Positions 2,561 to 59,646 of a stretch of DNA of 64,000 nt are shown here, one piece after another (positions within the stretch are counted from its first letter, which is position 1; each line of letters starts with the position of its first letter). The notes under the pieces are model-generated. The model worked only from the letters and a program-made list of their open reading frames with translations. It did not search any database and had not been told where the DNA came from. Position numbers and translations under genes: made by a program. The stretch comes from Paragordius varius (lineage: Eukaryota > Animalia > Nematomorpha): positions 10,540,001 to 10,604,000 of the forward strand of contig OZ176050.1 of the NCBI GenBank assembly GCA_964247055.1, read 5' to 3'.

Positions 2561-2976
2561 ATTTGTCGAAATTAAATAATAAAGCGAGGTTCCTTTTTGA
2601 ACTTCAAAAGATAAATAGATAATTTTATAAACTTTAATAACTTTAACAAATATCCGTAATTTCTGGTGTAAATTGAATTCACATATCATCATAGATATTT
2701 TATATGATTATTGGTTATATAGCATAATTAATTCATCATGAAAGTTAACTCCTAATAGCTTCACCCTGGTAACATAAATTTTTTTGATAGAATTGATAGC
2801 ATGTGGTTAATATATTTTAATTATACCCACAATGTAATTTAAACATTATTTAATTAACTTTTAGCACATCTTTTTAAAAATAATTTTTTAAACACCTGAT
2901 TAGTTTATACGTTTGATTTGTATTTATATTTAGCAAGCGGTATCAACATTGCCCTTTATTATATGATTTAAAATTT

Positions 2977-5482
2977 ATGTCAAGCCCCAAAGATATTTAT
3001 TATGAGGCAAAAAAACCTCGAACAAAATGGCAAAAATTTATGCGAGCCATATGGAATTCCGATCGTAAAGAGTTTTTAGGCAGAAATGCTGCTAGTTGGG
3101 GTATTATCATTATAATATTTAGCCAAAATTTTAATTGCTTATATAATTTTTTACCTGTTTTTGGCTGGTTTCTTTGCCATAATGATGGTTGTTTTTTTAC
3201 GTACACTAAGTCGGACGCGTCCTCGATACATTTTAAGTGACAGTATTATAGGCACAAATCCTGGTAATATATTTATTAAAAAGATCAAATCATATCTTAT
3301 GCTAAAATATTTCAATATAGGTATGGGTTATAGACCTCATCCTGATCCTGAAAAAACTCTTATTTATTTTCATCCCAATAAACCAAACACTTATTCACCC
3401 TACATCGATGATTTAAACAAATTTTTGAAAAGTATGCGCATATTTTTTGTTGCATTTATTATGTTTATGATTATTTATAATTTACTAATTTATGTAACAC
3501 TTTTAATGATGCTAGTTATATATAAATATTTTTTGGCTCTAAGCAAAATATTTTCATACACATATTTAAACGATAAATATGCTTGAAGCCTTTTTTAAAA
3601 TAAAAATAACATATATTTTTTCATCATTGGTGTTGGTGATATATTTAATAATATTTATTATTTTAGAACTTTTTTATACCATATTTTAACTTTTTTCAAA
3701 ATTTGGCTAAAAATATTTTTTTGAATTATTTTTAAAGCATATATATACAATGGATAAATATTTTGCATTGTTATATGTATATACTTTGTGTGTTGTAGCG
3801 CGATGAAAGATTTATTATTAATTTTAATAGTAAAAAAATAATGAATTTATTGATTTAGATACAGTTTATGTAGTTAGCTATATTTAGTTAGCCTACTACA
3901 TAGTATGTGCGCAATACAAAATAAAGCTATAACTTAAAGAGTAATTTATTAAGCGGTTAAATGCCGGTTAATATTTTTGATTTTGCGGATATTTTGACGA
4001 AATACTTAGCGTTGTTTTTGCATAATGTTTACGGACTAAACCTTCAAAAATTTGAGTAAGCTGTTTTTTGAATATGATTTTCAATGCACGATTAGGTTTT
4101 AGCGAATCTATGTATTTTCTGTCGATTATGGTATATTATGTTATTCCACTCATTACAATAATATATTTTATATATAGTTAAATACATCCATATTATTGAT
4201 TATATGGTCGTTAAGAGCAAAAAAAGTTTAAATGTTTGAAACGAAGGAATCTTTTTTTATTGATTACACTTTTGATCTATTTTTCCATGTCAGCTTAAAA
4301 CTTAAAATTATTTTATCTAACAAAAATATAATCACTAACATATTTATATATATTTGATTGCTAATTTTGTACAATACAACCCATTTTTAGCATATGAAAC
4401 GAGTGATCAAATGGAAGGGGAAGATTTCCTCAATTGTAATTACCAGCAAAAGGTTAGAGATGAACAAATCTGTAAAGTCGATATTAAGGACGTGAGCGAA
4501 GGTTGTGATAAATCCAGGGATTATGGTTACAAGGATGGGAAACCATGCGTCCTACTCAAACTTAACAAAGTTAATTTTTTTACGTTTATACATATTTTTT
4601 TGGGTATTACTTTAAAGTGTGGATCCATATTTATTGGTTATTGGAAAGGTAAATAAATATAAATGATTGATATAGTGTGAAAATTTGTACCTACTTTTAT
4701 TTTATACAATATCTAAAAACTCTCCGCAAGTGACGTAAACATTAAGAATAAGTCACATTATTTCATAAGTATTAAATGACATAAAAATTTTAAAAATTAT
4801 AATATTGCATGCAATTGAAAATTTACATAATATATTAATAAACATTGACTTTAAAAATAAAGCACATGATTGTGAAAATATCTCAAATTTTAGTTGAGTC
4901 ACAAGTTTATCATAAACCTCCCTTACGGTATTATTCTTATTTAATATTACAACTATATATTTACTGATATAATTTATCTTTGACTGTAATGCAAATTTAT
5001 TGGCAGAAGAAATATTTTTTGTTTTTGTTAATGATGGTACACTTAAATATGTTTTCTTTTAACTTTATTTGAACATAATTTTTTTTATTGTTGATCTGAG
5101 ATTATGTCCAAAATTTGAACTTTTTGTAAAGAAAATAGGATGGGAACTACCTCTAATGTTTTTGCAAGTTTTTTGTTAAATACCTAATTTTATATTTGCT
5201 AATGTACAATTTGTTGATTTTTAGTAACTATCATCTATTTTTCTGGTCCAATAATTTAGTTCTCTTTTTTTTCATTGCTTATAAATTATTTATGAAGCAA
5301 ATTTCCATTGTAATTAAATGTGATGCATATAATGAATGAACAGATCAAAATTGCATCTCCGATTTTAAATTTTACCATATAACTATTATACTTTTAGGTT
5401 AATTTATATTATCATATGTATACTTGATATATACCCATTTTTTGTTCATTTAATTAAACATTAAACAGTGTTTACTTTATAG

Positions 5483-5514
<32 letters not shown>

Positions 5515-8142
5515 GCAAATTTGACAACTATTAAATTTTGCCATTTTTTTTGGTTTTTCTGGAATAATTTAATAGTTTATTGAAATTTATTTTTGACAAA
5601 ACTAGTTTCAGTTAATTTATATAAATTGGGACTAATTGCTTTTAGATGCTAATATATTATTTGTTCTTAATTTTTAAGATAATATGGGATTGATCTTAAT
5701 TTTAATAATGCGTGCGTCTAACCTTTAAAACTAGCTTGCTTTGTTACTAGCATCATTCATAATTTCCATTTTTTAGCAAAACAATTTTTTTTGCTATAGA
5801 GTATTTTAGTAGGTGTTTACAAAATTTTACCATTTTAATTATGTAAATATTATATTAATTGAAATATGAAGTTATATTTTTTTCATAATTATTTATTAAT
5901 GGTGTGTCATTTGAGATCAATAAAATTATTATAAAAATAATAGAATAGACATAAGTTTGGTGCTAATTGATTTTAAAAGGAATAATAATGATATGAATGC
6001 CACACTTATATCCTGTTTTAGATTAGATATTTTAATCAGTGCTTATTTTGCACCATTATTTTATCATAAACAAATGATTCATTGAGAAGTTTTTTAATTA
6101 TATAAGTATTTAATAGAATCATATGTTGCTTAAAGAGCTTAATATAAACGGTAATATAGTCATTATGAATATATTCTTTTTCACGATAATTTTATTTAAT
6201 TTCAATATTAATAATTATTTTAGATTTTTTGATTTTAATATTGTGTAACTTGAATAATGTTTTTTATAATTAAGATTTATGGGTGGAAGCCAAAGCCTTA
6301 TGCCCCCAACAAAATACCAACTGATGTTATAGCTTCTTATGATAATAGATATGTCACAATACGATGCGAAGGCGAAGTATAACATTAATTTTTATTTTGC
6401 ATTTTATGAAATTTATTAAAACTACTAATTAAATAACCATCTTTTTTTAAGTTTGATTTATCAAGTTTAGTAAAGAGTTGTCTTAATCAAAATCTAATGT
6501 TTCATTTTCATTTATGATGTAGTCATAAGTCAATACCGGTTTAATTAAGAAAAGGTGTGAGCGAAAAGTACCCAATCAAATAATTTTATAGTTCATCTGA
6601 CATTATACTATAATCACCCACAATTTAGTCCGCCAGAAGATCGTCTTTTTAGCATTCAGTATTGCTTTTATATCAGAAAAATTATGAAGTCATCGTTTTC
6701 TGCTAAAAACATATGCTTAAGATGCTCTATCGATAAAACATGTGAAACATTCGTAAATTTAAAAGTTGTGATTTTAAGAGAGAGAGACCAGGCGCTTTGA
6801 TAAACCATACAATTGCGAAAACGATAAAGTTTACGAGTTAATTATATGTATAAGAATTAATTCATAACGAGCAATGAGAAAGACCAATAACTTGTGAATA
6901 GGTTTCACACAGTTTCAACAATATCCAAAATCGCAAAGTCGCTTAAGAAATCTTTTTTTGAGCCACGTAAGGAATTTTTACTTCGAACTCTGAAAAGTGG
7001 TTTTTTTAAAAAACTTTGCTTCATTCCAAGCCAGCCTAGTAACACCAGGTCAAATCATTTGGAAAAAACTACTCTGTGTCTGGTGGGATTAGAGCTGTAT
7101 TTTGTTTTATGAACCCTTTAGAAGTCTGGTGAAACCGTTAATACACAACGTTATCGCCAACAAATGATTCATTTAATCATGCAATAATCGAAAAATGATA
7201 AGAATGGGCCAGAACACATGGCAAAATGATTGCATAATATTGCTCTCTTTTTCGCAACGAATCCAAGTTACCTTGAAATCGTTTTGATGAGCACTTTCGC
7301 ATCCCCCATACTATCCTGTGGTTCACACTCTCGCAGAGCGGTTGAATAATTTCGAAGACGTTTGGCTTGATGAAGTGTTTGCCGGAAAAGACAATCAGTG
7401 TTTCTGGCAGTCATTCTTAAATTATCTGAAGGATTGCGTAAATCTCGATAATGATTTGGATAAAATAAATATTTATTTTTTCAAATCACACTTTTTACTA
7501 AGAAACTGGTGTAAACATATGGCCACACTCTACATTTATTTATAAATATTGATTACAATGAGAAGTCAAGGATGAGAATCATAAATCAATATATAGAAAA
7601 TATTTGAAATGTTTTATTTTTTTAAATCCATTGTCAATGATTCTACCATCTATCTTTACTTTTAGATTGTTATAACTTTTATCAGAAATTAAATTCATAA
7701 ACGATTTATTGTTGTTGAAAATATTATGCCTTTTTCTTTATTCATGATTACTTTGCACAGTCAATGTATGAGTAATAAGCCAAAACATCTGACTTGCATA
7801 TAAACAGCGTTTTTTATCCTTAAGGCATCATAAAACTTTAGCCTTTTTTACTATATAACATAGTTATTTTACATTTATGCATTGTAGAACGCAGCGGATC
7901 AAGAAAATATTGGTGAAATAACGTATTACCCATCGCCCAAGGGTATTTCCTACCTAGCTTTTCCATTCCTCAATCAAAAGGGCTATCAGGAATCGTTTAT
8001 TATGGCAAAATTTAACAATCCTCAACGTGGAATCCTTATCAATGTTATATGCAAGGCTTATGCCGGTAACATTGTTCACGATAAACCAAATGAAGAATCG
8101 AAACTCCGTGGTGCTGTACGTTTTGAGTTATTGGTTGATTAA
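2977..8142 (+). CDS. ATP1B: Na+/K+-transporting ATPase beta subunit (nervana/ATP1B family), 6 exons, 303 aa
   Basis: Exons 2977-3100, 3123-3263, 3321-3431, 4391-4569, 6275-6376 and 7888-8142 splice GT-AG, in phase, to 912 nt. Family motifs: EFLGRNAASWAKILIAYIIFYLFLAGFF (TM), [33 protein letters not shown], C-terminal RGAVRFELLVD*. Confidence 0.95.
3101..3122 (+). other. 22-nt GT-AG micro-intron (Na/K-ATPase beta intron 1)
   Basis: GTATTATCATTATAATATTTAG. Removing it joins frame 2977 to frame 3161 and restores SW-A-KILIAYIIFYLFLAGFF. Confidence 0.88.
6515..7531 (+). mobile_element. Degenerate mariner (Mos1-like) transposon in Na/K-ATPase beta intron 5
   Basis: Broken transposase: RYRQQMIHLNHAIIEK, SHPPYYP, MVHTLAERLNNFEDVWLDEVFAGKD, resembling the Mos1 C-terminus. 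Degenerate TIRs near 6517 (CATAAGT..TACCGGTTT) and 7500-7531. Confidence 0.75.
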
Positions 8143-8480
8143 AAGTAAAGGGGGAAGAGAAATTTTATTTTTGGTTATATCTAATTTTAAAAAAAATAAT
8201 TTATTTGTGTTTGATTACCATATTATAATCAAGATGTGTCTCACTAAAATGTTTTTTTACCCGTATAAATCTAAGAATATGTGTTATAATGCATATGTTT
8301 TATGATGACTGGTTTTTTATATCTCACCACTCTCTCGTAAACCCTGACATATACAGATGGATAATAAATGTATCCCCCATGTTTTTTCGTTTCTCCAAAT
8401 AATATAAATATTTCGTATGAAATTATTAATTATATCAACCTATTTTAATACTACTTATTATACGCCTCATGGTATTCATA

Positions 8481-39338: not shown

Positions 39339-42300
39339 ATGGGTTCTGATAAAGCACAAGATGTTCAACCTCCAAGGATGTCACATTCTTTTGTACTTAT
39401 GGGAGTTGGTAATTTATATAAATTGCAAATTCTGTTAAAGAATGATAAATATCTATAATTTATAATAAAATTTAGCTTATATATGCGTATAAAGTAAAAT
39501 TAGTTTTTAATTTTGGACTTTTATTTAAAAATTTTTTTTACCAAAAATACATATAGTTTAATGGATAAGTTACTAGGTAACTCTTTTCAAAACAATGGTT
39601 CAGCAAACCCTCCGTTTGAAAGGTACCATTGTGTAATATTAGCTTAATTGCATAATCATAATATTTAGTAAGGAGTAAATGATTAAAGCTAATAAGTTTT
39701 TACGTAATTAAACCTTATCACTTCGAATGGGGTATCTAAATATCTTAGACCATATTTAAATTGATAATTTTAAAAAACTGAAAGAAACGTTTCAAATTTA
39801 AATTATGCTTCTATTCCAATAAAAATTATATAAATAAGACAAATTATCTAAGTAAAATTTAGTTTTGAAAAAAAATTCCGTATCAAACCACTTCGACGCC
39901 ATTTTTATTTTACAACATTTTTGCAAAATATCGCGTTATTTAATCTAATGCCAAAATTAAATGTACTTTTTAATTGAAATCACATTCAATATTGATATAA
40001 ACACAAAAAGTGGTTTATTTTGCATTATGCACACATGTAATAGCTAGATTTTTACCTTTATGTTTTTTACCTCTTTATAAGTTATATTAAGTATTTGTGA
40101 ATAAGTTTTTATATTTCGGTTCATTGATGTTATACAAGTGCAAACTTTTGCATGATTTAATTTTTTCCTTATTATTTGAAATATTTAATTTTAAACAAGC
40201 CTGGATACAACTCCCCAATTTAAATCGAAGGACTGGAATGAATGTGTTGTGTCCAAGTGTTAACACATTCAAAATAAAAAAAATTATTTTAAGGAGCACT
40301 AGTTTTGATTTTGGGCGTGTTTAGCGTTTCTGCCATAGTTGTTTCACGAGGGACAAATAGTAGATTATTTCCAAAGAATCCAATTTATGCCAAAATGATC
40401 AATCAAAGCATTCCACTTGTCTGCATAATTAGCTTCGGAGGAATATTGTGTTTCATTTTCGGTGGCGTGATGTTTGCATACGAGGTAAAAATATTTTACC
40501 GTAAGAATACTGTTTATAATTTGAAGTGCAATTTTCTAGTACTAAATATACATTAATTTATTATTCAATTTATAAATCACGTATTTAAAATTGATATCCA
40601 TGAAAAATAATTATTAAGAGGCTGTCACAGCAGAGTTGTTATTGGTGTAGTAAGCGGTTAAAACAAATCATCATCTTTCAAAAAATAAATAAAATATTTT
40701 TTATGGCCATCTGTATATGTCGATTATTTCATAGAAAAAACAAAAGGAAAAAGAGGAGCATCAAGAAATTCAAATCGTCAGAACTAAAGGTAATGCAGAA
40801 TCATTGGCTGATAATAAGAAACCAGAAGAGATAAAATTACTAACTAGTAAAGCATACAAAGGGGCAACCATAACAATTCCAAATGTTAGCGGTTCAGGAG
40901 CGCCTTCACCCACCTCACCAATGGAGAAATTAGCGGAAGATCCGTGGTGGATTTCATGGGAACATATGAGTTTAGAAAGTCAAATTCTAGGTAAGGGTAA
41001 CTTTGGACAGGTACAGAAGGGAACTGTATTCGATAAAAAAACGGGCCAAACGCAAGTTGCAGCCATTAAGACTATGAGAACCACAAAAGGTATTTTATGT
41101 CGTATACCAAGTGACATTTTAAATGTCGATATTTTCCAATCGTTAACCTTAGATTTTGAAACTTATTGACTCTAAGTTAATATAATATGAGTTTTATTAA
41201 ATAAGAAAAACATAATGTAGACATTTTGAAAATGAAACCATGCCTCCAAAATTGTTTTTAATACAAGTAGCATATTTAAGAATGCAATAAATAAATAAAA
41301 ATTCTTTTCCTGGTTATCATATCAAAAAATTGTTTAAGAATTTTATCGGATTAGGAAACAAAAACGCTGAAGAAGCATACGAGCTAATGGTTGCCGAAAT
41401 GGAGATTATGAAAAAAATTGGTTACCATCCAAACATTGTTAATTTGCTTGGATATTGTGAACATGATGGTACTTTTTAAATATTTTAGATTGTTGACTTA
41501 ATTCAGCCTTGAGTAGGCCCAAAAACCTAAATTAAATTACGTTCTGGCAGCAGTATTTTATAAAAGAATTTGATTAGAATAAAAGCAATGGAAAATAAAC
41601 CCTGAAATATCAAATTAAACAATTTTTAAGATTCAAATATATCGGCGAATCCATAAATATTCCATTGTTTTAAAGAAGAATTAGAGGCCGAATCAATAAG
41701 TCATTTTGGTATACAGTAAGATTGATAAAGAATTATCACGAAAAAGCAAATGAATGTTCAAATGAAGAAAATGATTAGCACATGGTTAAAAAATAAATGT
41801 AAGTAGATGCAGCAGAAAATCATCAAGGGTCGTATATGGGGTATTTATTACATATTTTTAATCATGTGCTAATCATTTTCTTTTGGATATTTATTCGTTT
41901 ATTCTAGAAAATCATTTATTAATCTCATATATATATATTACTACAAAAAAGGATTTTTTTAACTGTTTTGTGATTAGTACTTTTATACTAAAATTCAATG
42001 CAATTAAGTAATATTTTGGATAAGAGATAAAATTATTTTAACTGACAAGGAAACTAAATTAAAAATCCATATTGTGTTTTAGGGTCATTGTTTGTAGCCA
42101 TTGAATTTGCACCTTACGGCGATCTAAAAACTTTCCTTAAAAAGGCTAAACAAACCAAGCAGGATATGGAAAAGAAAGGAGAGAAGGGAGATCCTTTATC
42201 GGTGACGCAAATGTTAAAATTTGCTCTGGATGTCGCCAAGGGCATGGAACACTTGGCTAAACATGGGGTAAGTATCTATTTATTTATAAAAAAATAATAT

Positions 42301-52200: not shown

Positions 52201-55200
52201 CCTATGATACTAGCCTAAAATCTTTATTACCCCTTAAAAAACAAATATTTTAGTATAGGGGGGTTATTTAAATGAGTCGCTAAGTAAAATTTTACGCCCT
52301 GAAAAATGCGCCGCCATAAAACAATTTTTTGGTTTTGAAGCAATATTCCAAGAAATTATAGGAACATATGGAATCCATGATAATTCCAGATATTCCCCAT
52401 GTGTGAAGACAAAAATTTTTCCCAACGCTCTTTTTAATACCTGCCCCTATGTAAGGAGTTACCCGCTAAAAACTAGTATATAGAAATTGCGTTGTTTTGG
52501 AGCGAATTTACAGAAAATTTATGAAGCCATTAGAGCCCATTAAGGGCTTTAAATATTACCCATAACAAGGTAAAAATTAAAGTCAGGCGTTTTTTATCGT
52601 TAGTTTAGGTAGTTTATGGCCTAAAAATACGTCATTATATAACGATTATTTAGTGTTGAGGTATTTTTTCGAATAATCCATGAGACAAAAAATTGCAATA
52701 TTCTACATTTATGTAGGCTTTAAGGGTTTTTAACACTAAAGAAGTGTAGGGAATACCATTCCTAAGATGCATTAAAAGCTGTTTTGCCACCATCTTCTGG
52801 AGCTCTTCTTCTGTATATAGGATATCCATTGTTATCTGTAATCGTATTTGTTAATAAAAACCTGGGATACCGCTTGAAGCATATTCCATCTTTCATACAT
52901 GGGCACGTAGGGTTTAAATCGTTACAGGGTCCATGTATCATATATTTCATAACAACATCATTTAAATCTGTATCAATCGTAGGATCAGGTATTTTAGCGG
53001 ATATAAAAGAATCTATTTCACTTGACTGGTATTTTGGAATAAAGCCAAATCGATATATGTGCATGTGGTAGTCCCCTCTTTTGCCACTCGACTGAGTACA
53101 TCCAACATTGCACTGTACCAAACACCTCGAATCTAACTATACAATCATCAAAAATCTAAGCTTCTGAGATAGTAGTAGAATTTTTATAGATTTCCAAAGA
53201 GGATTACGTGTAAATGTAATAAATAAATCTGGCGCCCACATTGTGCCACATACGCGAGAGCATCCTGGGCATATAGATGCATATGACGAGGACTACCTAT
53301 GTATGAGGATGGTAGTATTGTAAATCTCCCAATATCGTTAATATTATATTCATTAATTAAAGCATCTCGCAGGTGTATATATATATTCTTCAGAACAAAG
53401 TTTAGCCTGATTTAACCGAAGATATAACATACGCTCTGTTTTCATTTTTGCATACATATCTACAATGTATTGGTGAAATAATTGTCGGCATCTTAAAATA
53501 TGATTATCCTGACCGTCCCTTATCATTAATCGATACGAATAATATTTCATTGCGCTACATTTTTTATTAATTTCTTGTTTGGTGATAGATTAATCATTAT
53601 AACATTAAAAATTATATCCATCTCTGCCATCCTAGAATATTAGTGGATATTGTAATAATAAATTATTGCAATGGATCAAGTTCAACTATATCATCACCAA
53701 CAAAATATATTTGTAAAAAATTGTGATGGCTCCCTTGTGCCGGAAGCAAAGAGCCTGCCTTTGGATTTGACCTTTTACTTATAAAAGTTAGTTCATTAAT
53801 TTATACTATATCAGTTCCAAACGATGTCATTTGAAAGCAAGAATTGTACCCCCTAATATTTTGCAAAAAATGTTTAGAATCAGGAGTAGTATTGGCTAGA
53901 AGATTATTTAATGTCATGGGTAAACTCTGAAATGGTGGTAAATACACCTTACGTGATGCACAACATAGCCCTTTGGATTCATTTTTAAATCTTAGAGCAT
54001 TACAATAGGAACATATTATACTCATGGAGCCAATGTCATCCTCACGTAATGCGTGATAGTCGATATCTGTATCATAATGAAAGGCTAAACGATGGTATTG
54101 AGGTTAGCATCCATTACCATTGGTGTATGTAAATTTTTAACATGGGTCCTATAGATAAAATCGCTTTATCTATAATACAAATAGAACAGCAATACGCATA
54201 CAAGGTCCATCATGCTGATCTGTTGTTTGGCTCTTGATTTGAAATTAATGTTATAACATAATGGAGTAGGAGTGCACGATACAGCGGGAACATTATGATA
54301 CAGATATCGACTATCACGCATTACGTGAGGATGACATTGGCTCCATGAGTATAATATGTTCCTATTGTAATGCTCTAAGATTTAAAAATGAATCCAAAGG
54401 GTTATGTTGTGCATCAGGTAAGGTTCATTTACCACCATTTCAGAGTTTACCCATAACATTAAATAATCTTCTAGCCGATAATACTTCTGAATCTAAACAT
54501 TTTTTGCGAAATATTAGGGCAAATTCCTGCTTTCAAATGACATCATTTGGAGCTGATATAGTACCAACTAATGAGCTAACTTTTAGGGTGAGAGGTCAAA
54601 TCTATCATAAAGCAGGTTCTTTACTTCCACAACAAGGGATTGATCACAAATTTTTACAAATATATTTTGTTGGCGAAGATACGGTTGAATTTGGTATCCG
54701 TTGCAATAATTATATCAATCTTAAGAGGCCAATATTAATGCAGTTACAGGAAATATTACATCGTCATAATCAGTTGGTGAAATTGTTCAAAACAGCTATA
54801 GATATGATGCCGTATGATACGCATAAAATTGTTATTCATGCTGACAAAGTGCCTCATGGCCAACATGAACGCAGATATAATGCTCCTACAATGGATGAGG
54901 TGGCGATTGTTATGGACGGCGATCATTTTTATTCAAGAGATATTGTTCTTCACCTGAGAAGCAATAACCTAAAAAATGTGTCCTAAACTCATAGATGTTA
55001 CGATCCACTACAATATCCACTATTATTCTGGGATGGCACAGATGGATATAATTTTAATGTTAAAATGATTAATCCTATCACTAAACAAGAAACTAATAAA
55101 AAATGTAGCGCTATGAAATATTATTCCTATCGTTTAATGATAAGGGACGGTGAGGATAATCATATTTTAAGATGCAGACAATTATTTCACCAATACATTG

Positions 55201-57457
55201 TAGATATGTATGCAAAAATAGAAACAGAACGTATGTTATATCTTCGCTTAAATCAGGCTAAACTTCGTTCTGAAGAATATATACACTTACGATGCTATAA
55301 TTAATGAATGTAACAACGATATTTGGAGATATACAATATTACCATCTTCATACATAGGTAGTCCTCGCCATATGCATGAATATGCCCAAGATGCGCTCGC
55401 GTATGTGGCACAGTGTGGGCGGCCAGATTTATTTATTACATTTAAATGTAATCTTATTTGGGAATCTATAACTGTTCTCCTACTCCCTGGACAGGCCCCA
55501 AAAGATAGGCACGACATCACAGCTCGAGTGTTTAAGCAAAAGCTTAGATCTTTAATTGAATATATAGTTAAATTAGATGTGTTTGGTGAAGTGCAATGTT
55601 GGATGTACTCAGTGGAATGGCAAAAGAGGGGATTACCAAATGCACATATATTGATTTGGCTTTATTCAAAAATAAAGTCAAGTGAAATAGATTCTATTAT
55701 ATCCGCTGAAATACCTGATCCTATGACTGATAAAAAATTAAATGAGGCTGTTTTGAAATATATGATACATGAACCCTGTAACGAATCAAACCCAAGGTGT
55801 CCATGTATGAAAGATGGAAGATGCTCCAAGCGATATCCCAGTTTATTAACAAATACGATTACAGATAACAATGGACCTTTATACAGAAGAAAAGCTCCAG
55901 AGGATGGTGGCAAAACAGCTTTAATGCATCTTAGGAATGGTGACGTAGAAATAGATAATCGATGGGTGATTCCCTACTCCCCCTTATTGTTAAAAACCTT
56001 TAAGGCTCACATAAACGTAGAATATTGCAATTCTGTAAAATCGATCAAATACATTTGCAAGTATATAAAAAAAGGCAGTGATATGGCTGTTTTTCGCGTC
56101 CAACCTGAAATTGCAAGTGAAAATATTAAAGATGAAATATCCCAGTATTAGTCAGGAAGATATATAAGTAGCAGTGAGGCTGTTTGGCGAATATTTTCCT
56201 TTCCCATACATGAACGTAGCCCTACAGTTGTTCATTTATCAATACATTTAGAAAATGGGCAACGTGTCTATTTTACACCTTCTAATGCCATAGAGGTAGC
56301 TAGAAAGCCACCAGATACTACTATAATTGCTTTCTTTAAGTTATGCCAAAAGGACGCCTTTGCGAAAACATTCCTATTACATATGGAACTCTAAAAAAGA
56401 ATTCGAACGGCGCAAGCGAGAGATTCAGTTGCTAGTCTGGTATATGTAAAGGTGCGGCATTACGAATGTTTTTTACTTCGTCTGTTATTGATAAATGTGA
56501 GAGGACCATCTTCATTTAACAATTTGAAAACCGTAAACGGTGTTTTAAATCATACGTTTCGCGGTGCATGCCAGGTGCTCAAGTTGTTGGAAAATGATCA
56601 ACATTGAGATTTATGTATCCATGATGCCCCAAACATCCTACCCTCATCAAATACGTACTTTGTTTGCTATTATATTAAAGCTTCACCCTCATAACCGGCG
56701 GAGCTATGGGAAAAAAAATCAAATGTCTGAGGACATCTTGCTGCAGTACTGTTCAGGTAATTTAATAATAATAACGATGAAGTAGAAATTTTTAATAACG
56801 CTTTGCTAAAAATAAAATTCCCCACCCCAACTTCTTCGCGCTGCGTAGCAGGCCGATTGCGCTAAATTATATTTATGTAAATAAAACCATTTGTATCCAT
56901 TTCATTGGTGTCATCCTCCATTTGAGTCGCATTCAATGTTTCTTCATCTTCGTTTATCCAATTATCAACAGTGACTTGATTAAAACCACGATTTATTAAT
57001 TGTCTAAAATGCGTAAAATAAAAAGGATTTATGAATTACCCAAATATACCAAACCGTCTATTATTCAATAAAATGTAAACAAGTTATATAACATACCATA
57101 TCATAAAAATATTTCAGCCCTTCATATAATTGAAAAATATATCATTTTACATTGTCCAATTTACTTAAAACAACGATAAATATAACTATTTAAATTTTTT
57201 TAAAATTTACGAGATTATGGTTTTTAAAGATATTTTATTGTTAGGTGACAAAGTGAGGGAGGCGACCCTTTAAAGAAAATTTATTAAATTATGGTAAATA
57301 TTTGTATATTTTAATCAGCATAAGAAAGCGAATACCGATAGCTATTTATTATGTGATTTAACATAGTCTCCTTAAAGACTTTACAGTTATAATATATAAA
57401 CATTATTTTTAGTACTCAAATGAATGCTGTTATATACTAACAGTTATGTTCATAACA

Positions 57458-57526
<69 letters not shown>

Positions 57527-59025
57527 ATACATTTTAAGATTTTCTTTCCTCCTATGTAAGTCCATAAGAACTGGTTTTAATTGATTGAAATGAGTTTCCA
57601 ACTCACCACATTTGGTTTCGTGTTGATTAATTTTTTGTTGAAGGGCCGTTAAATGGTTCAACAATTGTACACGTTTAGTTTGCATGGTTGACATGTTATT
57701 CTCAATGATAGACATATCCCTTCCACTAAGCATAGTAACGTAAGTTTGAGCATTACGGGTCAAGAGCAACATTTGACGATCAAACGCTTCAATCAGGCAA
57801 TTAAGTGCATGAGCCGCTGCAAACATAGCATATGTACTTTAAATTAATCTTTTCAAATTTACCCTTAAACAATTTAATAAGAGTTTCAACATTTTATATA
57901 TAAACCATTTACGCCTCAAATTCATTCTTAAACACTTCTGGATTCCGGATATTTTAAATCCGCAAACATTCCAACACAACAATCTCCACTTCATTTTAAA
58001 ATTCAAAAATTTAATACTTATTTCTGGGCTAAATTGACTTATGAATAAGATTAAATTTGTTTTAAACAAAGTTTTTTATTGGATAATATTTTTAAAAAAT
58101 AGGTAGTTTTGGATTTAAATGCCTGAATAATTATATTTTGTTATATGATTATCTATATTTTTGAAAAAAACAACTTATAAACTATAGTAAAACGATAAAA
58201 AATTAATAAATTTCATCTAAATTATTGATTCGGCCTAAAAACCGATAAATTATTTACAGTTTATTTGTGAAATAAATGGTATCTGGAGCTATCTCCAAAA
58301 AAATTTTACGCTTTGTTTAAAAGAACAAAAGCTTTAACAACAAATCATAATGTTTAAATATTACCTTTTCGATCTTTTTCCAATGTTGATCGGGTTAAAT
58401 TTAATTGTACATAGGTACGATTAGCAATACGGGATTTCATTAGATGTTTTTGAGCAATATTTTGCAATAAAGAACGATATGATATGGGAGATTTTTTAGG
58501 TGAACATCCTATTAAATTATCGCTATCCTCCATAAATTTGTTGCTCTCATGACCATTAGATGATTTGGATGACGATCTAGATCGGTAAGAAGATTTACAA
58601 ACAGGTTCTCCCAATTTTATATCAAGAGATCTATTATATTCAATGAGAGAATGTGATTGATAAAATTCAATTAAATTTTGAAGGCTTGTAAATGCCAAGG
58701 GTTTGGCAAACCCGTATTTTCCATGTTCAAAGTAAATCTTTATCAGTTTGTTGGTCATATCTTTTCTATATTAATGTATAATTAAAGGTCATACCTCAAC
58801 GTAAGGGTAAACTCCTTATATCGTTTTTGATTTAAAGAATATCTCACTAAAAAGGATCCGTCACTAGCTCCATTCAATAACTGGTCACAAAACACTCTGT
58901 CTACATTACCCCAAAACCAATCGATATTTTCTAAGGAATCATCGTCAATATGTTTCGCTATAATTATTAAATTAAACAATAATACATGGAGATCCATATC
59001 CCGAATCATCCGTTACTTTGGTCAT
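49207..59025 (-). CDS. PIK3R: Class IA PI3-kinase regulatory subunit, p55/p60 type (nSH2-iSH2-cSH2, no SH3/RhoGAP); 8 exons, 503 aa
   Basis: Exons 59025-58986, 58957-58795, 58765-58365, 57816-57531, 57003-56888, 50725-50603, 50502-50349 and 49435-49207 splice GT-AG, in phase (1512 nt). nSH2: WFWGNVDR..DGSFLVR..FTLTLR..NKLIKIYFEHGKYGF. iSH2: QLKPVLMDL. cSH2: RAENLLRRKEMGTFLIR..VRHCLI..YGFAEP..SLVEHNAELN. Confidence 0.93.
51420..52690. repeat. Diverged ~320-bp tandem repeat, about 4 units, within the Helitron 5' region
   Basis: ATATGGAATC recurs at ~51733, ~52051 and ~52366. GCCCT.AAAAATGCGC and (T)CCAG.T.TT recur with the same period. Confidence 0.75.
52691..54079 (-). pseudogene. Inverted, internally deleted Helitron Rep fragment
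   Basis: Minus strand: LAFHYDTDIDY, MSIICSYCNALRFKNESKGLCC, YYSYRLMIRDG, WQKRGLPHAHI, IHGPCNDLNPTCPCMKDG. It is the reverse complement of parts of 54291-56033. Confidence 0.9.
54291..56815 (+). pseudogene. Helitron Rep (HUH endonuclease) region, frameshifted, PIF1 helicase domain absent
   Basis: PDLFITF, VEWQKRGLPNAHILIW (HUH motif with His to Asn), SIKYICKYIKKGSD (YxxKY tyrosines), LLINVRGPSSF. Several stops and frameshifts. Coding homology stops just before the 3' terminus. Confidence 0.92.
57461..57523. repeat. (TA)n microsatellite, the longest of many (others ~5484, 8483, 12178, 12468, 24415, 27414, 28729, 34481, 42571)
   Basis: Direct inspection. Confidence 0.95.
58766..58794 (-). other. 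29-nt GT-AG micro-intron (PI3K regulatory subunit intron 2)
   Basis: GTATGACCTTTAATTATACATTAATATAG. Removing it restores the SH2 sequence FTLTLR|KDMTNKLIKI. Confidence 0.9.
58958..58985 (-). other. 28-nt GT-AG micro-intron (PI3K regulatory subunit intron 1)
   Basis: GTATTATTGTTTAATTTAATAATTATAG. Removing it joins MTKVTDDSGYGSP to SKHIDDDSLENIDWFWG in phase. The N-terminus is not conserved, so support is weaker. Confidence 0.7.
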
Positions 59026-59063
59026 ATTGAACACAGCACTTTTTACATGAATGTGTGGAAAAG
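59026..59063. promoter_or_regulatory. 38-bp interval between divergent start codons of the PI3K subunit and endosulfine genes
   Basis: Minus-strand ATG at 59025 and plus-strand ATG at 59064. A shared or overlapping promoter/5' UTR is inferred, not shown. Confidence 0.5.
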
Positions 59064-59646
59064 ATGAATACTATTATTGAAGAATCAAAATCGTCTCCTG
59101 AAAAGTCTGATGTCGCTAATCAATGTATCGATGAAAAGCAAAAATTTCAAGATAAATACCAAATGAAAAAGCCATTGACGTCTAATTTTTTGTGTAAGAG
59201 ATTGCAAAAAGGAGTAAAAAAATTTATAAATTTAGCAAAAATATTTTGACTCTGGTGATTATAATATGGCTCTATCGAAGAGAAAGATGTTTGCAGACAA
59301 AGTGTTAGCTGTTTCTGACGTAACTAAACAAGAAGAAATTATGAATATTCAGAAAAAATATGAAGATAATTTGCAAAACGCTCAGGAGACGGAAACTGAA
59401 GAAAAACAACAAAGCAATATCCTAATTCATGTGCCATCTATAACAACCACTACCGATAACGATGATTTGGATGAAATAACCGGACATATTATACCAACAC
59501 CTGACAATGTTCCTATGCGAAAAGCTTCGATTCCCTTATCCGGTAACACAATTGGATTGCCTGGAACCCTCAAATCTTCTCAACAATCTCACCCATATTT
59601 AACCGTTTTACAAGGTCAAGCACACCGTCATTCAACAGCCTCCTAA
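59064..59646 (+). CDS. ENSA: Endosulfine/ARPP-19 family PP2A-B55 inhibitor; 2 exons, 186 aa
   Basis: Exons 59064-59213 and 59236-59646 give SNFLCKRLQKG|QKYFDSGDYNMA (Greatwall phosphorylation site FDSGDY) and ITGHIIPTPDNVPMRKAS. Confidence 0.93.
59214..59235 (+). other. 22-nt GT-AG micro-intron (endosulfine)
   Basis: GTAAAAAAATTTATAAATTTAG. Exact removal rebuilds the invariant KRLQKGQKYFDSGDY motif. Confidence 0.95.

Follow-up and report, generated by a model that had tools for sequence, protein, structure and literature searches.

Introns shorter than about 30 bp are generally considered to be absent from animals (PMC13644364, Mol Biol Evol 2026). When 51 animal genomes were surveyed, such introns were recovered only from myxobolid Myxozoa, where the median intron measures 22-27 bp, and from Dicyema japonicum; the main text of that survey makes no mention of Nematomorpha (PMC13644364). 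Both are parasitic lineages with compact genomes, in which GT-AG introns carry reduced splice-site motifs and the tiny size is the median. Among protists, the introns of the Bigelowiella nucleomorph are 18-21 nt long. For ciliates, published abstracts place tiny introns at about 25 nt in Paramecium and about 15 nt in Stentor. In ciliates and nucleomorph alike, nearly all introns are tiny, and they are AT-rich, with the branch adenosine a few bases from the acceptor.

The locus described here lies in a 64,000-nt stretch of the genome of the horsehair worm Paragordius varius (GCA_964247055.1, contig OZ176050.1, positions 10,540,001 to 10,604,000; hereafter the window), and comprises a Na/K-ATPase beta gene whose first intron appears to be 22 nt long. 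Like the introns of Myxozoa and Dicyema, this is a GT-AG segment of less than 30 nt with reduced splice-site motifs in an animal of a parasitic lineage; unlike them, it shares its gene with introns of 57-1705 nt, its surroundings are rich in transposons, and its counterpart in a relative is 7 kb long. In its size range, AT-richness and putative branch adenosine close to the acceptor it also resembles the protist introns, but here tiny introns are a single class alongside others whose sizes vary widely. The genome of another nematomorph, Gordionus, has 26.9% GC, 63.8% repeats and 71.6% BUSCO completeness, and the paper that describes it does not discuss introns (10.1101/2023.06.26.546503); the word intron is likewise absent from a preprint that compares Mermithidae with Nematomorpha. 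Nematomorph introns below 30 nt appear to be unreported in the literature that we searched.

Results

The beta gene, on the plus strand of the window, was modelled as six exons and five introns (Table 1). Its first ORF opens with the ATG at 2977 and runs to ...EFLGRNAASW, which ends at 3099 and is followed by a single base, G, at 3100; the next 22 nt, GTATTATCATTATAATATTTAG, begin with GT, end with AG and are not a multiple of three in length. CC stands directly 3' of this segment, such that its removal yields a split Ala codon, G|CC, and the reading SWAKILIAY..., with exon 2 past the split codon translating as KILIAYIIFYLFLAGFF... and the downstream frame, as translated beyond the segment, as KILIAYIIFYLFLAGFFAIMM.... 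With the segment left in place, the exon 1 frame passes instead into an unrelated ORF, 87 aa in total, that stays open to 3240. The original prediction had identified this 22-nt sequence as an intron whose removal restores the frame of a 303-aa protein, and the gene model bears out sequence, frame and length: the six exons sum to 912 nt, which amounts to 303 codons and a terminal stop, and no stop occurs before codon 304.

Table 1. Exons and introns of the Na/K-ATPase beta gene, and further tiny introns of the window (positions counted from its first letter).
Feature	Position	Strand	Intron length (nt)	Remarks
Exon 1	2977-3100	+		Cytoplasmic N-terminus, phase 1; PF00287 columns 2-31; 8k1l_B residues 26-63; Gordionus 62%
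Intron 1	3101-3122	+	22	GT-AG; intron at same codon and phase in Gordionus, Limulus and Trichinella
Exon 2	3123-3263	+		Transmembrane helix, IIGTNPG motif; PF00287 columns 33-70; 8k1l_B residues 65-111
Intron 2	3264-3320	+	57	In frame, stop-free; homologues have no 19-residue insert here
Exon 3	3321-3431	+		PF00287 columns 76-112; tblastn with Gordionus protein
Intron 3	3432-4390	+	959	Boundaries from sequence and tblastn
Exon 4	4391-4569	+		PF00287 columns 128-180; 66% identity to Gordionus protein
Intron 4	4570-6274	+	1705	tblastn
Exon 5	6275-6376	+		IYGWKPKPY...RCEGE; tblastn with Gordionus protein
Intron 5	6377-7887	+	1511	Transposon-like sequence with very high-copy core at about 7128-7176
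Exon 6	7888-8142	+		Includes stop codon; PF00287 columns 207-283; about 67-68% identity to Gordionus protein
Endosulfine intron	59214-59235	+	22	GTAAAAAAATTTATAAATTTAG; phase 0
PI3K regulatory-subunit intron	58766-58794	-	29	GTATGACCTTTAATTATACATTAATATAG; GT-AG, phase 2, in N-SH2 domain
PI3K regulatory-subunit intron (probable)	58958-58985	-	28	Candidate, GTATTATTGTTTAATTTAATAATTATAG; joins short first exon MTKVTDDSGYGSP to KHIDDDSLENIDWFWG

Searches against Pfam, solved structures and a protein library were made exon by exon. Five of the six exons match the Na/K-ATPase beta chain family (PF00287) in order, from column 2 to column 283; exon 5, searched alone against Pfam, gave no match. Exons 1 and 2 also align with the Artemia beta2 subunit structure (8k1l_B), and in this alignment, as in that with Pfam, where the segment falls between columns 31 and 33, exactly one position is absent between the two exons, that of the split codon. 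A phmmer search with exon 6 against a library of representatives at 50% identity returned a single outstanding match, at 68% identity, with all others at or below 54%. This best match is an annotated protein of 302 aa from Gordionus sp. m RMFG-2023 (the Montseny horsehair worm; assembly GCA_954871325), and when it was compared with the window by tblastn, identity was 61-67% in four exons and 51% in exon 5. A word search seeded with the Gordionus protein found nothing closer than 43-47% (chelicerates and mites), and a similar search with the 87-aa exon 1 ORF gave no candidates. The Gordionus protein reads ...GRTAASWAKITGAYIIFY..., including ...AASWAKI..., and thus the Trp-Ala-Lys junction predicted by removal of the 22 nt is found in the protein of a relative.

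A search for introns at the same codon in orthologues had been suggested as a check on the prediction, and Gordionus, Limulus and Trichinella each have one between the counterparts of exons 1 and 2, after the Trp codon plus one base and in phase 1. The junctions read TGG G|GTAATT...CTATAG|CT AAG in Gordionus, TGG G|GTAAGC...CACTAG|CC AAG in Limulus and TGG T|GTAAGT...TTTTAG|TT GAG in Trichinella. Position and phase are the same as in P. varius, but length is not: 22 nt stand against 7,068, 11,178 and 811 nt, respectively. An Argonauta paralogue has no intron at the exon 1/exon 2 position. Where tblastn matches end in Gordionus and Limulus, the breaks correspond approximately to all five introns of the P. 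varius gene. The position of the 22-nt segment is common to nematomorph, nematode and chelicerate genes, and the site of intron 1 is probably old within Ecdysozoa. A GT..AG stretch that is not divisible by three in length, which sits exactly in the gap between Pfam matches and at an intron position common to three other ecdysozoan lineages, goes beyond what chance would be expected to produce, and the comparison between species lends strong support to an independent 22-nt intron in this gene. The Gordionus orthologue (OX940784.2 44552192-44583876) spans 19.7 kb and has introns of about 7068, 810, 1970, 8810 and 117 nt; introns 1-4 are much longer than those of P. varius and intron 5 is much shorter (117 versus 1511 nt), such that size has changed in both directions.

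These comparisons also bear on how exon 1 is joined. The acceptor at 3122/3123 could be real while a different donor or a first exon further upstream is used, in which case 2977-3100 would not be joined as proposed. An in-frame donor is indeed present at 3095 and would give a 28-nt intron, also of phase 1, but its use would delete Ser-Trp, of which the Trp is present in all homologues that we inspected; we rejected it on that account. Exon 1 as modelled fits the PF00287 columns given in Table 1, and both the codon and the phase in which it ends are those of Gordionus, Limulus and Trichinella. Joining of either alternative kind seems to us very unlikely.

Intron 1 of the proposed model runs from GTATTA to TTTAG. 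Its donor is weak, without G at +5, and it has almost no polypyrimidine tract; G at +5 occurs in one of the five donors of the gene (GTATTA, GTAATA, GTATGC, GTTAAT and GTATAA). Intron positions 11-16 read TATAAT, a plausible branch site, in which the best candidate for the branch point is the second A of TAAT, at position 15; it lies 14 nt downstream of the first base, with the last G following 7 nt later. The other tiny introns of the window carry TAAT-like motifs 5-9 nt upstream of their 3' ends, and the endosulfine intron has TATAAAT. The donors of U12-type (minor) introns follow the consensus RTATCCTT, which the donor GTATTATC does not fit, and a U12-type intron was rejected.

The data show the sequence, the frame relations, colinearity with homologues, conservation of the intron position and selection on both frames; that the segment is in fact removed from RNA, which adenosine serves as branch point and which spliceosome acts are inferred. 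The 22-nt intron would be the positional counterpart of the long ecdysozoan intron, retaining little beyond a GTA donor, TATAAT with the most likely branch adenosine, and a TTTAG acceptor. The major spliceosome most likely removes it, and would be the same one that handles the 57-nt to 1.7-kb introns of the beta gene. Because the intron is in all likelihood too short for the usual side-by-side binding of U1 and U2 particles, recognition would have to be of the whole intron and is probably sequential, by analogy with ciliates and myxozoans.

It is conceivable that a real intron of this kind is spliced inefficiently or in a regulatable manner, retention leading to an 87-residue product or an unstable mRNA and acting as a brake on expression. 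The weak donor and extreme size would suit such a role, and the read-through frame remains open for 46 further codons, such that a retained form would meet no immediate stop. There is no sign of regulation, however, and the beta subunit serves the sodium pump in a housekeeping role; we give regulated retention little chance of being correct.

To the comparison between species can be added one between samples. Four sequencing runs were placed on positions 2800-8400 (5,601 letters), and since they cover introns and intergenic DNA alike, they behave like DNA. A single search of sequencing runs for this stretch listed no RNA run that contains it. The X1 contig is identical to the window across 2903-3534, while the X4 contig, obtained from another sample of this organism, spans 2871-3696 with 15 substitutions and 7 gap letters. 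With only 7 gap letters in all, the X4 contig cannot lack the 22-nt segment, which is thus present in DNA contigs from two samples, and none of the 12 differences listed for X4 falls inside it. Substitutions between X4 and the window amount to about 1.8%, with small indels in addition, and a divergent haplotype is seen at several sites in X1 as well, which together indicate high diversity within the species.

Among the best-supported differences listed, 11 are exonic and occur on both sides of the 22-nt segment; 10 of them are synonymous third-position changes (binomial chance of at least 10 of 11 at third positions, about 1e-4), the remaining one being Ser>Gly. Intron 2 holds 3 of the listed differences. 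The predominance of synonymous changes on both sides implies that both frames are under purifying selection, and that the frame shift between them must be resolved in the mRNA. This argues against the 22 nt as a frameshifting insertion in a decaying pseudogene, a reading invited by the break that a segment of this length makes in the ORF. No other stop or frameshift occurs within the 303 codons, the segment begins and ends precisely with GT and AG and falls on an ancient intron position, and two more conserved genes in the window, described below, show the same pattern, all of which make decay extremely unlikely.

Hardly credible, finally, is removal or bypass without a spliceosome, whether by programmed DNA elimination, as of the internal eliminated sequences of ciliates, or by ribosomal bypassing: the segment is similar in size to those ciliate sequences, but its ends are GT..AG and not TA..TA, its position is that of a conserved spliceosomal intron, and it is retained in the DNA contigs of two samples, with neither a contig that lacks it nor a 3100>3123 joint in the four runs. 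On the comparative and population evidence, we regard 3101-3122 as very probably a genuine spliceosomal GT-AG intron, 22 nt long and in phase 1, which precedes four others in a functional beta gene.

The window is rich in transposons. Over the repeat core of intron 5, X1 contig depth reaches 4379 (bin 7101-7287) against about 350 elsewhere, numerous loose contig ends lie on both sides of the core in all four runs, and contig joints typical of transposon copies occur across 6540-7560. A 332-aa ORF on the minus strand at 15469-16467 matches a reverse transcriptase (PF00078, E 3.5e-31) and represents a retroelement fragment. Helitron-like sequence occupies 53896-56151, with a match to PF14214 (E 5e-29) at 55372-56148, and includes near-identical inverted pieces at about 53896-54021 (minus) and about 54349-54474 (plus).

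Two further genes of the window contain introns of comparable size. As first proposed, the endosulfine intron has the same 22-nt length and a similar 3' end; it joins ...RLQKG to QKYFDSGDYNMA. The exon downstream of it has a weak Pfam match, and a word search with the endosulfine exon returned nothing at E <= 0.001. On the minus strand, the gene for a p85-like regulatory subunit of PI3K has a 29-nt intron, its upstream exon aligning up to p85alpha residue 372 (TLTL) and its downstream exon from 374, with Arg373 as the split codon. Removal of the GT-AG segment restores exact colinearity in both genes. The PI3K gene also has the probable 28-nt intron listed in Table 1 and at least one further intron of several hundred nt. 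It lies head to head with the endosulfine gene, across a very short gap (58986-59213), which makes a common bidirectional promoter possible.

Short GT-AG stretches in this genome are not all introns. One of 21 nt at 40970-40990 (plus strand), in a tyrosine-kinase gene, keeps the frame, contains no stop codon and, translated, provides the LG that precedes the GKGNFG glycine loop; a coding reading suits it better, and we rejected it as an intron. When the window was scanned for tiny GT..AG introns on the basis of ORFs, the counts matched those of a reversed-sequence control. Because such a blind scan does not discriminate, the case rests on homology and not on window-wide statistics, and we kept only candidates backed by homology.

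Intron sizes identified in the window are 22, 22, 28 (probable), 29, 57, 959, 1511 and 1705 nt, such that only three or four introns shorter than 30 nt were found within 64 kb. The suggestion that about 22 nt may be the modal or minimal intron size of this genome found no support in this window: the four other introns of the beta gene are of 57, 959, 1705 and 1511 nt, and the other tiny introns are of 22, 29 and probably 28 nt.

Discussion

What the present analysis adds to the original prediction is a match, in codon and phase, to introns of 0.8-11 kb in three other lineages, the signature of selection on both reading frames, and a transcript that would be shared with kb-scale introns. We suggest, as a possibility that falls short of being probable, that horsehair worms have a distinct class of 21-30 nt introns that arose by collapse of ancient long introns and are spliced together with kb-long ones, even in the same transcripts; they would then be the third animal lineage with introns of this kind, and the first whose genome is large and rich in repeats.

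Annotation pipelines readily overlook tiny introns, and where this happens, intact genes can take on apparent frameshifts. Common aligners and gene predictors have minimum intron lengths near or above the sizes described here, so that tiny introns could break gene models. If so, broken gene models could explain part of the low BUSCO completeness of nematomorph genomes, such as the 71.6% of Gordionus.

For splicing itself, an intron of 22 nt in the same transcript as introns of up to 1.7 kb points to one machinery that would accommodate an approximately 80-fold range of sizes within a single gene. The same-site pair of a 22-nt intron in P. varius and a 7-kb intron in Gordionus would also offer a natural system for investigating how introns shrink and the minimal sequence needs of a metazoan spliceosome.
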